A DNA stretch of 64,000 nt from Pavona decussata. Its lineage: Eukaryota. Every line of letters starts with the position of its first letter. Positions within the stretch are counted from its first letter, which is position 1. The translations under genes were made by a program, and so were the position numbers. Where the stretch lies: the NCBI GenBank assembly GCA_977016875.1, contig CDRNST010000015.1, positions 1,612,001 through 1,676,000 on the forward strand. The letters are read 5' to 3'. Shown in pieces: positions 11,642-13,825 of the stretch. A model generated the notes under the pieces. It had not been told where the DNA came from. It saw nothing but the letters and a program-made list of their open reading frames with translations, and ran no database searches.

Positions 11642-12174
11642 TGTCGCGGAATCTTTCATGAACTCCGCACTTGCCGGTTCACAAACTGAAGAGGACTGTA
11701 ATTCTTTCCTTTTCTGAAGATTTATTTAACATTCACAATCTGACAATCTCTGATCCAATCTACAATATTCGCGATGCACAGTTCCGTTCACAATTCGTTC
11801 TTAATCGATCTGATCTTACATTACAATTGTACTAAGATTTTCTAGGTTCTATTTGCGCAACAAGTATTTTTACTACAATCACGAGCACAGTATAATCCCA
11901 AGGCTATACTATTGTAATGCTACTAAATTTGATTTCAATTACACAATTACACGCGTTTCTCTTCCTTATTTAGCTTAATACTACGCGGGTCTACGCGTGC
12001 AGTTACATCATTGTCATGCAGTGTATTAACTTCGGACTTTCCCGGAGTACAATTGTGCAATCTGCTTTGCTCACTAATTTTAAAGTATTGCTCGCGTTAC
12101 TATTTCGTGACATTGTTCATCAAATTTCCAAGTTAATATTCTACGTCACGCACATCAGTGCTTCTTTCCCGACA
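11642..12174 (-). repeat. 5' LTR of the BEL element
   Basis: 533 bp, TGTCGGGAAA...TTCCGCGACA on the minus strand. Confidence 0.97.
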
Positions 12175-13825
12175 AAATGTGTTTTTGCTCGATGATTTTG
12201 TAATCTTTCTGCGGATGTCAATCAGCCTTTCTTGAACACGCGTCAATCCCAATTAAACTTCAAACGTTTCACTCAACGCTAGTACTTCTTGTGCAGTTTC
12301 CTCAGCGTCATGATACTCCTCAAGACAGTAACATAAGTCCATCTTTGCAATCAGCCGATAAATCTGCAATACGTCCATTTCCTTGTTGCTGCCGAACTTG
12401 GTCTCAAGTGTTCCCAGACTTTCTTCGGTTTCCATGATGTTCTGTCTTATTATGTCTTTGTTTCTGGGTACAGTCTTGTTTCGCAATTTAGATTCATCAA
12501 AGCAATTTTGACTACGGCACACTGTTCATAATACGTAGAGAATGATTCGCCGTCTGACTGAACGCACATCTTGATACAACTATCCAACAGCTTCTTCCCT
12601 TCAGTAGCGCCATAATACTCCGTTCTCGAGCCAGGAAACATGGAAGCAATATCCATTTTGAAACTTCCTAACTCGTATAGCAAAAGCATCACAGGGCAGC
12701 AAGGAGGGAAGCCTGACGCAATTTTCCTAGCAACCTCCAAACACATCTCGGCTTTTCCAAACATCTTTCTCCTTTTATAAACTGTAGCAAGGTAGCTCTT
12801 TGAGAAAACTTCAAGCAGAAGCCGAACTGAACCGCTGGTCTTTTCAATCTTCTTCACGGCATTGTTCATCATGTCTTCTGCACGTTCCAAGTCATTCATC
12901 CTAAAAGCGATGGCGATACTTTTCTCCAGGACAACGATGATCTCACGACTTGGATTAACCGCATCGTCTTTAAGTAAAAGTTCTTCGGCACGACGTTCAA
13001 ATTCAGGCTATCTACCGTTCAATAATAGTGGACGTAATGCATTTATACAACGATGCAAGGTCTGCAGTGCTTGCTGAAAGGTTGAACTATCATTCTCGAA
13101 AGAATATCCGTTCAGAGTTGCTTCTCTCCTATCTTCACCCGAGCTTGAAGTGCTATAGTTTGGGTTGCACCCCAGTGTCTTTTCCTGCGCTTTCGATTAC
13201 ATCGTTTCTTTCGTAGATTTTCCGCTGCTGCCTCAATGCCGCACTTCCTTTCTTCGTCTACGCCCTCACAATAATGTTGCTTACACGTTACGACCGGGGA
13301 AAACGTCGATATCGCCGCTGACGTTTCCTCTATAACTAGCATTTTCACAGTGCAATGGGAAACACCCCGGCTCTTTTATGATCTTGGCCATGTTTTGCTT
13401 GGTTAAGTCCAAACCAGCAATCTTTGCATCGCCTTTTGATACGCGCTCGCTCCATAGGTCAGACAATGATTTTCTTTGAAGCTCAGAGTTATTGCTCAGC
13501 GCAGAGGAGTCAAAATTGATTACGTTATTGTCACCAACCATTACTACTTCTCAATTGTTGATATCCACAACAAACTGATTGGAAGGCTCCGAGCTGGGGC
13601 ACTGCGCCACGTAAGCCGAACTTCTGTCTAGCACACGCTTGTTTAACACTACGTTTTCCTGCGTCAAATTTGCCATTCCGCCACACGGAGTTAGTGATAT
13701 ACCAAAGCAATATAGGAGTTGGGGGTACCAGACCAAGATGGTCTCTTACCCAACCAACTCAATACTACTATTACCATTCAATGATAACCATTTTATGAAT
13801 CCAGCATGCAAATCATCCGATGAAA

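Follow-up and report, generated by a model that had tools for sequence, protein, structure and literature searches.

Functional amyloids assembled through RHIMs (RIP homotypic interaction motifs) are central to necroptosis in vertebrates and to IMD signaling in Drosophila. The motif is a segment of 18-22 residues with the core tetrad (V/I)-Q-(V/I/L/C)-G and with ladders of Asn and Gln that stabilize the assembly (PMC13506858; PMC9444067; for the ladders also PMC7885112). The cryptic RHIMs of Drosophila (PGRP-LC/LE, IMD and Pirk) keep only VxxG and form functional amyloids, which serve NF-kB-type signaling without cell killing (PMC13506858). In fungal PP-motif NLRs (PNT1, a PP-NB-ARC-TPR protein with HELLP) and in bacterial BASS systems, a RHIM-like amyloid motif at the N-terminus, in which N, Q and G abound, is found together with a C-terminal sensor made of tetratricopeptide repeats (TPRs; PMC7885112; PMC12881547). 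Kajava et al. (2014) described many amphioxus RHIM proteins with innate-immunity architectures in which the RHIM replaces death-fold domains; "several other invertebrates" are said to hold subsets of these, and the text of that paper names no cnidarian (PMC4262963). According to one survey RHIM functions arose in vertebrates (PMC9573974), another reports no RIPK1 homolog in cnidarians (PMC12119088), and a literature search turned up no description of a RHIM protein from a cnidarian. Here, we describe a decayed gene in a 64,000-nucleotide stretch of DNA from the coral Pavona decussata (contig CDRNST010000015.1, positions 1,612,001 to 1,676,000; hereafter the window), together with its intact relatives, in which a RHIM-like motif precedes a TPR domain.

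Our reading is that the window holds a dead copy of a gene from an intact TPR/RHIM-type family, which by analogy with the systems above would signal by motif-nucleated amyloid assembly; we put the probability of this reading at about one half. As judged from sequence, the family is an uncharacterized one that joins a RHIM-like motif to a TPR domain, is present in multiple copies in corals, is conserved across phyla and is probably transcribed. The window locus itself matters solely as a pointer to this family, which outweighs the dead copy in importance.

The decayed copy and its intact paralogs

The minus-strand segments 13676-12175 and 5648-5558 of the window are a dead copy of an intronless gene that was later split by a young BEL/Pao retrotransposon. 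Frame 1 of the minus strand reads MANLTQENVVLNKRVL...SNQFVVDINN, then a TGA at 13551-13553, then EVVMVGDNNVINFDSS..., and downstream of the motif come a charged Ser-rich linker and about 300 codons of helix-forming sequence (including LERAEDMM, KAEMCLEVARKI and EEYHDAEETAQEVLALS). These strings are present exactly as quoted in a first-pass annotation of the stretch, which had read through a single TGA and proposed that it came from a Cys codon. The closest intact paralog, L002, does have TGT (Cys) at this site; the TGA is where it was placed, but it is not the only lesion. Alignment to L002 over 1615 bases locates four in-frame stops (13551-3, 13376-8, 13008-10 and 12253-5), the third aligned with TGG (Trp) and the fourth with AAA (Lys) in L002, as well as three frameshifting indels, near 13383 (-2) and at 13174-5 (+2) and 12473-4 (+2); several further indels keep the frame. 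The likely ATG is at 13676, position 13736 being merely the first codon of the mechanically called open reading frame (ORF). At the other end, the pseudogene edge at 12175 is the exact outer border of a long terminal repeat (LTR) of the BEL/Pao element, and beyond the element the last 29 codons continue in frame at 5647-5561. Could such a copy still be functional, for example by readthrough or by incorporation of selenocysteine? Its first break is indeed a single TGA at a Cys position, but the three other stops are TAA, TAG and TAA, and with the three frameshifts they rule out a rescue of this kind; because a 6.5-kb retrotransposon interrupts the reading frame as well, the copy is regarded as non-functional, and the chance that it still works as next to nil.

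Searches were made with separate gene pieces or with intact paralogs. In a six-frame search of the same genome, the longest open piece of the pseudogene matched 13 other loci. At least seven close relatives are uninterrupted single ORFs of 439-544 amino acids, counted from the first Met; six of the intact paralogs cluster on contig C20, in a stretch of about 120 kb (426-543 kb), C498 holds one, and the window copy is on a different contig from the main cluster. The first-pass annotation had called for a search for intact paralogs and had assigned the motif and the helical region to one gene, and in these seven or more paralogs a single uninterrupted ORF does hold both. Among the remaining loci, L009 (G000:C57:1499967-1500563) is a second decayed copy with five stops, and L010-L014 are more distant relatives with longer N-termini. 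One of the latter, L011 (G000:C182), is an L012-like gene whose frame is divided into ORFs of 369 and 333 codons; it is either a pseudogene or an artifact of assembly.

Contigs of four sequencing studies span the L002 ORF as far as position 3185 or so and do not cover the upstream stretch 237-472. From this pattern of coverage, in runs that are only guessed to be RNA, L002 is probably transcribed.

Architecture of the family

Intact members consist of about 40 variable residues, a motif of about 21 residues lying in disorder, a disordered linker, a TPR superhelix of about 310 residues and a Ser/acidic tail. The family motif, h-V-N-I-x-N-N-S-G-T-V-(V/Q)-(V/I)-G-D-N-N-V-(I/V)-N-V (h, hydrophobic), takes the form h-V-(D/N)-I-N-N-C-A-V-V-I-V-G-D-N-N-V-I-N-V in the clade of the window copy and h-V-N-I-x-N-N-S-G-T-V-V-V-G-D-N-N-V-V-N-V in other clades. 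Paralogs with an overall identity of only 25-45% retain it next to a linker that cannot be aligned, and in an alignment of 22 sequences the sole nearly invariant sites of the first 200 residues or so are N53 and G60, both within the motif. A 33-position profile of the motif, made from intact paralogs only, recovers the window site in a genome-wide search (E = 1.7e-11), and the matched segment includes the TGA; because of this, the motif is not considered a chance pattern. In the AlphaFold2 (AF2) model of L002, computed from the 22-member alignment, residues 1-204 have a predicted local distance difference test score (pLDDT) below 50, the exception being the motif itself, which forms a weak beta-hairpin (47-51/55-59) that is not docked onto the TPR domain. 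The linker ranges from about 60 to 150 residues in the 22 members and retains the basic cluster RKRxKR and, behind it, an acidic patch rich in S; in L002 this cluster, RKRxKRxxR at residues 170-185 or so, resembles a nuclear localization signal.

The motif is not retained everywhere. In the intact paralog L004:1123-2439:- (439 amino acids) the motif region is mostly deleted, ...NRFIVKIKS being followed by EFFSVVKC, and the same holds for P0005 and P0007. A motif-less, TPR-only protein of this type could serve as a regulator or decoy.

The C-terminal part of L002 is predicted with high confidence as 14 helices (residues 205-517, pLDDT above 90). With Foldseek, the top PDB match of this domain is the TPR domain of LGN/Pins (E 6e-4 to 2e-3), followed by Rap/NprR and subunits of the APC. 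VIA-align, run on the homologous domain of the relative L012, matched APPBP2 (Z 22.2; root-mean-square deviation 3.2 over 264 residues), phage Rap (Z 19.5), MalT domain III (Z 18.6), LGN (Z 18.1), AimR (Z 17.5), NprR (Z 17.4) and PlcR (Z 16.4), the first two with deviations of 3.2-3.3 over 242-264 residues. The models thus identify the C-terminal domain as a predicted TPR superhelix of the peptide- or ligand-sensing type, to which it is similar in fold and size but with which it shares a sequence identity of only 8-15%, and a common TPR fold does not show a common function or ligand. Pfam does not call the domain at its own threshold: the window piece scores 16.1 bits and the paralogs 16-20 bits on TPR_12, for which the cut-off is 30.1. 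In the wider family, 51 of 98 members match TPR_12 at E <= 1, and ESM Atlas returned for the full protein nothing beyond generic TPR neighbors. Two expectations of the first-pass annotation, a motif conserved in homologs and a C-terminus that forms an alpha-solenoid, are thereby borne out, the one by N53/G60 and by 62 motif instances across the wider family, the other by the helical model and its structural matches. Behind the superhelix, most members end in a conserved tail, ...SSKNNTPYSSEYEDKL (L002 residues 520-544 or so), which could be a phospho-regulated or a TPR-groove-binding peptide.

How widely is this architecture distributed? A word search gave 25 homologs, and an exhaustive profile search gave 221 representatives (at <=50% identity) at E <= 1e-3, of which 125 reach E <= 1e-10; all 221 share the C-terminal domain. 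They come from corals, Nematostella, a hemichordate and amphioxus, and none has a name beyond "uncharacterized" or "hypothetical". Examples are found in Stylophora pistillata (XP_022785220.1, PFX13944.1), Oculina patagonica (XP_078384344.1), Nematostella vectensis (XP_032220863.2, EDO47770.1), the hemichordate Glandiceps talaboti (XP_077989882.1), Branchiostoma belcheri (XP_019615954.1, KAI8485564.1) and Branchiostoma floridae x japonicum (XP_078572111.1, XP_078583099.1). When 62 motif instances from the wider family are aligned, the second tetrad position is Q in 17 and V in 21, N stands three residues after the tetrad G in 58, and N at -7 and G at -5 are found in 33 and 30, respectively. Two tandem motifs are present in P0013, P0054, P0057, P0094, P0105, P0124 and L012.

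The part in front of the TPR domain is more varied. In the amphioxus protein P0156 (XP_078572111.1) a Death domain (40.9 bits) stands in the place of the motif, N-terminal to the family TPR domain, and in Nematostella P0092 (EDO47770.1) the TPR domain is preceded by a VVQLGDD motif and, N-terminal to that, by ankyrin repeats; in these two proteins, N-terminal modules appear to have been swapped before the same TPR domain. The longer relatives (L012:187-2295:+, L013, L014 and P0040-P0105) carry one or two Q-type motifs, such as YLQVGENNNIHV, and share a beta-sandwich of about 150 residues with the signature GYWFRF...Y.I.F.L (AF2 pLDDT 80-95). ESM Atlas gave a weak, C2-domain-like lead for this sandwich (score 0.86), and all VIA matches of the 703-residue L012 model fall on its TPR part.

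The motif as a probable RHIM-type module and alternative explanations

How closely does the motif resemble a RHIM? With the vertebrate motif of RIPK1, RIPK3, ZBP1 and TRIF (PF12721) it has in common a length of about 20 residues, a disordered surrounding, and the order of hydrophobic strand, N-rich turn, h-x-h-G and x-x-N. Its register matches that of ...IYNCSGVQVGDNN... in RIPK3. Like a RHIM it is a short segment in a non-globular region, to judge from the low pLDDT around it in L002, and it has flanking Asn and Gly both in G-x-x-N and in the N-rich turn before the tetrad. Moreover, true (V/I/L)Q(V/I/L)G tetrads occur at the corresponding N-terminal site in many distant members (...AVQIGDHNV, ...SVQIGRDNY, ...HVQVGQNNT, ...YVQLGDENS, ...CLQLGDHNN and ...LVQVGESNE), and P0105 bears two of them. 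Both Nematostella and corals have members with canonical tetrads, and LOC116603563 is a Q-type example from Nematostella. The canonical pattern [IVL]Q[IVLC]G was found in 23 of 129 complete N-terminal regions, compared with 2.3 +/- 1.5 (maximum 7) in 1000 composition-preserving shuffles and with 2 of 171 C-domains, and the extended pattern h-(h/Q)-h-G-x-x-(N/H/S) in 57 of the 129, compared with 3.4 +/- 1.8 in the shuffles; the members are kin, so these enrichments of about 10-fold and 17-fold overstate their independence, which has to be counted against the proposal. In hhalign, V-type and Q-type motifs align in register (P = 0.0076). PF12721 falls on the motif exactly in P0105 (E 0.0098, 15.9 bits) and in P0030 (E 0.2, 11.7 bits). 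We therefore read the family motif as probably RHIM-type, whether homologous or very closely convergent, and the motif of the window clade as a Q-less variant of it.

The comparison also brings out differences from each of the described systems. Vertebrate RHIM proteins have kinase, Z-alpha or TIR domains, none of which is present in this family; in many family members the tetrad is separated from the N-rich turn by one residue more; and the Pfam model stays under threshold. For the Q-less tetrad, the cryptic RHIMs of Drosophila offer a functional precedent, but their host proteins are unrelated and the family has neither a PGRP nor an IMD death domain. According to Kajava et al., ZBP1 and HET-s also have the tandem copies seen in several family members, and the amphioxus RHIM proteins have an N-terminal RHIM where death folds sit, some of them with repeats, which recalls the Death-domain member of the present family in amphioxus; their repeat-containing example BF82280, however, is NLR-like with a NACHT module, which is missing here (PMC4262963). 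The order of amyloid motif and TPR sensor is that of the fungal PP-motif NLRs and of BASS, from which the family differs in having no NB-ARC or NACHT module and in that no adjacent effector gene with the same motif was found. No NTPase domain was detected in any scanned family member, the only trace being a weak SNaCT5 match in P0097 (E 0.0017).

In the mechanism that we propose, the TPR domain would bind a ligand or partner and raise the local concentration of the protein, the N-terminal RHIM-type motif would nucleate homo- or hetero-oligomers of cross-beta (amyloid-like) structure, joining paralogs to one another or to a RHIM-bearing effector, and a signal for innate immunity or cell death would be relayed by these assemblies. 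This would be analogous to the action of RIPK1/RIPK3/ZBP1 and of fungal PP-NB-ARC-TPR receptors, but would proceed without an NTPase/NOD module (PMC7885112; PMC12881547). An immune context is suggested because the amphioxus homolog has a Death domain where the RHIM-type motif sits.

Several observations weigh against this proposal. In the window copy and its closest paralogs the tetrad is VMVG, VIVG or VVVG, with V, I or M in place of Q; because the Gln is missing, the window clade fails the strict RHIM definition, and formal RHIM membership does not extend to the subfamily of the window copy. A check with the Pfam RHIM model, suggested in the first-pass annotation, turned out negative: PF12721 has no match at E <= 10 on four window pieces or eight intact paralogs, and at E <= 1 it matches only 2 of 98 distant members, both under its 20-bit cut-off. 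No RIPK1, RIPK3 or ZBP1 chain was found at E <= 10 among PDB sequences, whether with hmmsearch (family profile A1 and motif profile A2) or with phmmer (P0105 and P0054), in searches whose power is low for a motif of 20 residues. A whole-genome scan with the motif profile, of limited sensitivity, matched only TPR paralogs and the window pseudogene and revealed no motif-only partner or effector; nor is there an effector gene among the neighbors of L002, which are one paralog and one hAT fragment. In the AF2 model of L012, from the subfamily with long N-termini, the motifs fall within a beta-rich part of moderate confidence, so that in this subfamily they may belong to a fold. Finally, that the runs covering L002 are RNA is a guess.

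The genome was also scanned with PF12721 itself, a scan without power, which gave four sub-threshold matches (best 18.8 bits, E 1.3). The best of them, L015 (G000:C129:1392638-1392676:+; KAVQIGANNYLIR), occupies an open frame of 54 codons, has no evident coding neighbors and, for want of a coding context, is treated as a probable chance match.

What else might the motif be? It could be an extended peptide that docks in the TPR groove of its own chain or of a paralog, giving autoinhibition or head-to-tail oligomers and no amyloid, with a RHIM likeness that is merely convergent. The closest structural relatives of the domain are indeed peptide- or degron-binding TPRs (APPBP2, Rap, NprR, PlcR, AimR, LGN and MalT domain III), the motif always accompanies the TPR domain without a separate motif-bearing partner having been found genome-wide, and the conserved C-terminal tail could also be a groove ligand. 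We nevertheless consider groove docking rather unlikely: AF2 left the motif undocked, the module that takes its place in the amphioxus homolog, a Death domain, is one of homotypic oligomerization, and RHIM and prion-forming motifs, unlike TPR ligands, are marked by (V/I/L)Q(V/I/L)G-x-x-N tetrads and by tandem duplication. It is quite unlikely, too, that the motif plays a structural part, as a beta-hairpin or pair of strands within a small beta domain at the N-terminus, and does no signaling of its own. Such a role is compatible with L012, in which predicted strands at 54-65/70-73 and 139-150/155-158 (pLDDT about 70-80) hold both motifs and adjoin a confident beta-sandwich at 173-314, and with the hairpin predicted at 47-59 of L002. 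Around the motif of the window subfamily, however, pLDDT is below 50 and both length and sequence are variable, which leaves the motif without a domain of which it could be part, and amyloid-prone segments, too, typically appear in AF2 models as very long isolated strands.

The RHIM likeness might even be fortuitous, the motif being a low-complexity stretch rich in N, V and G in a TPR family unrelated to immunity; no curated model reaches its threshold, and the VxxG criterion is very loose. Against this stand the conservation of the motif among divergent paralogs next to an unalignable linker, the excess over shuffled sequences, the restriction of the motif to this one family genome-wide and the Death domain in its place in a homolog, all of which make pure chance very improbable.

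Returning to a family that signals by RHIM-type amyloid assembly, what would it mean? Because intact coral copies of a RHIM-like/TPR gene exist, RHIM-type signaling may predate bilaterians. A wider proposal, tentative and with the odds somewhat against it, is that RHIM-type amyloid signaling is older than the cnidarian-bilaterian split, that the family is one of NOD-less TPR sensors or adaptors with exchangeable N-terminal modules, and that reef-building corals expanded a subfamily in which the tetrad Q was changed to V or I. If so, the modules exchanged would be a canonical RHIM, a Q-less RHIM variant, a Death domain, or ankyrin repeats with a RHIM, in a family common to anthozoans, hemichordates and amphioxus; the coral Q-to-V/I subfamily could assemble in a network of its own, shielded from canonical RHIMs; and the family would be the missing animal counterpart of the fungal and bacterial amyloid-motif/TPR receptors. 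It would provide concrete candidates for the question of whether amyloid-based immune signaling is ancestral to animals, and would bear on the relation to the fungal and bacterial systems as well as on coral stress, disease and bleaching-related cell death. Members with canonical tetrads in Nematostella would be available in a genetically tractable host.

Origin of the copy and inserted elements

The features of the locus are listed in Table 1. Homology between the window and L002 starts about 40 nucleotides 5' of the ATG, takes in some 0.75 kb of 3' flank and breaks off close to L002 position 3150. The window copy is a duplicate of about transcript size and plausibly a retrocopy. The signs of retroposition are mixed: the homology ends near where the RNA-like contigs do and the copy is on another contig, but a clear poly(A) is missing from the 3' boundary and the parent genes have no introns either, and these last two points leave a retrocopy origin no more than plausible.

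Table 1. Positions of the gene remnants and of the inserted retrotransposon in the window (UTR, untranslated region)
Feature	Position	Strand	Remarks
Main pseudogene body	12175..13676	-	Likely ATG, motif, linker and TPR-like region; 87.5% nucleotide identity to intact L002
RHIM-like motif	13512..13574	-	FVVDINN-stop-EVVMVGDNNVINF; tetrad-equivalent VMVG; stop at the Cys (TGT) site of intact paralogs
TGA stop within the motif	13551..13553	-	Aligned with TGT (Cys) of L002
Decayed TPR-like helical domain	12190..13100	-	Equivalent to L002 residues ~205-517
BEL/Pao LTR retrotransposon in the 3' end of the gene	5649..12174	-	~6.5 kb; LTRs, target-site duplication, polyprotein domains
3' end of the gene, displaced by the retrotransposon	5558..5648	-	FRDIPKIIDSCS...SSN, then stop; matches the conserved C-terminal tail of paralogs
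3'-UTR-like flank	4590..5557	-	Still homologous to L002; homology stops about where RNA-like contigs end on L002

The BEL/Pao element has two LTRs of 534 bp each (5649-6182 and 11641-12174), which are 100% identical, and is bordered by the target-site duplication AAAT(G). A single uninterrupted ORF of 1803 amino acids, of the gag-pol type, extends across 6210-11621 and contains Peptidase_A17 (6.6e-47), DUF1759 (3.7e-43), Integrase_H2C2 and RVT_1 domains. The insertion is very recent, and since the gene copies differ by 12.5% and the LTRs not at all, it is much younger than the gene duplication.

The 3'-UTR-like flank contains another insert that is absent from L002, of about 335 bp at approximately 4962-5296 (minus strand), which ends with AATAAA and an A-run and looks like a small retroposed element resembling a short interspersed element (SINE).

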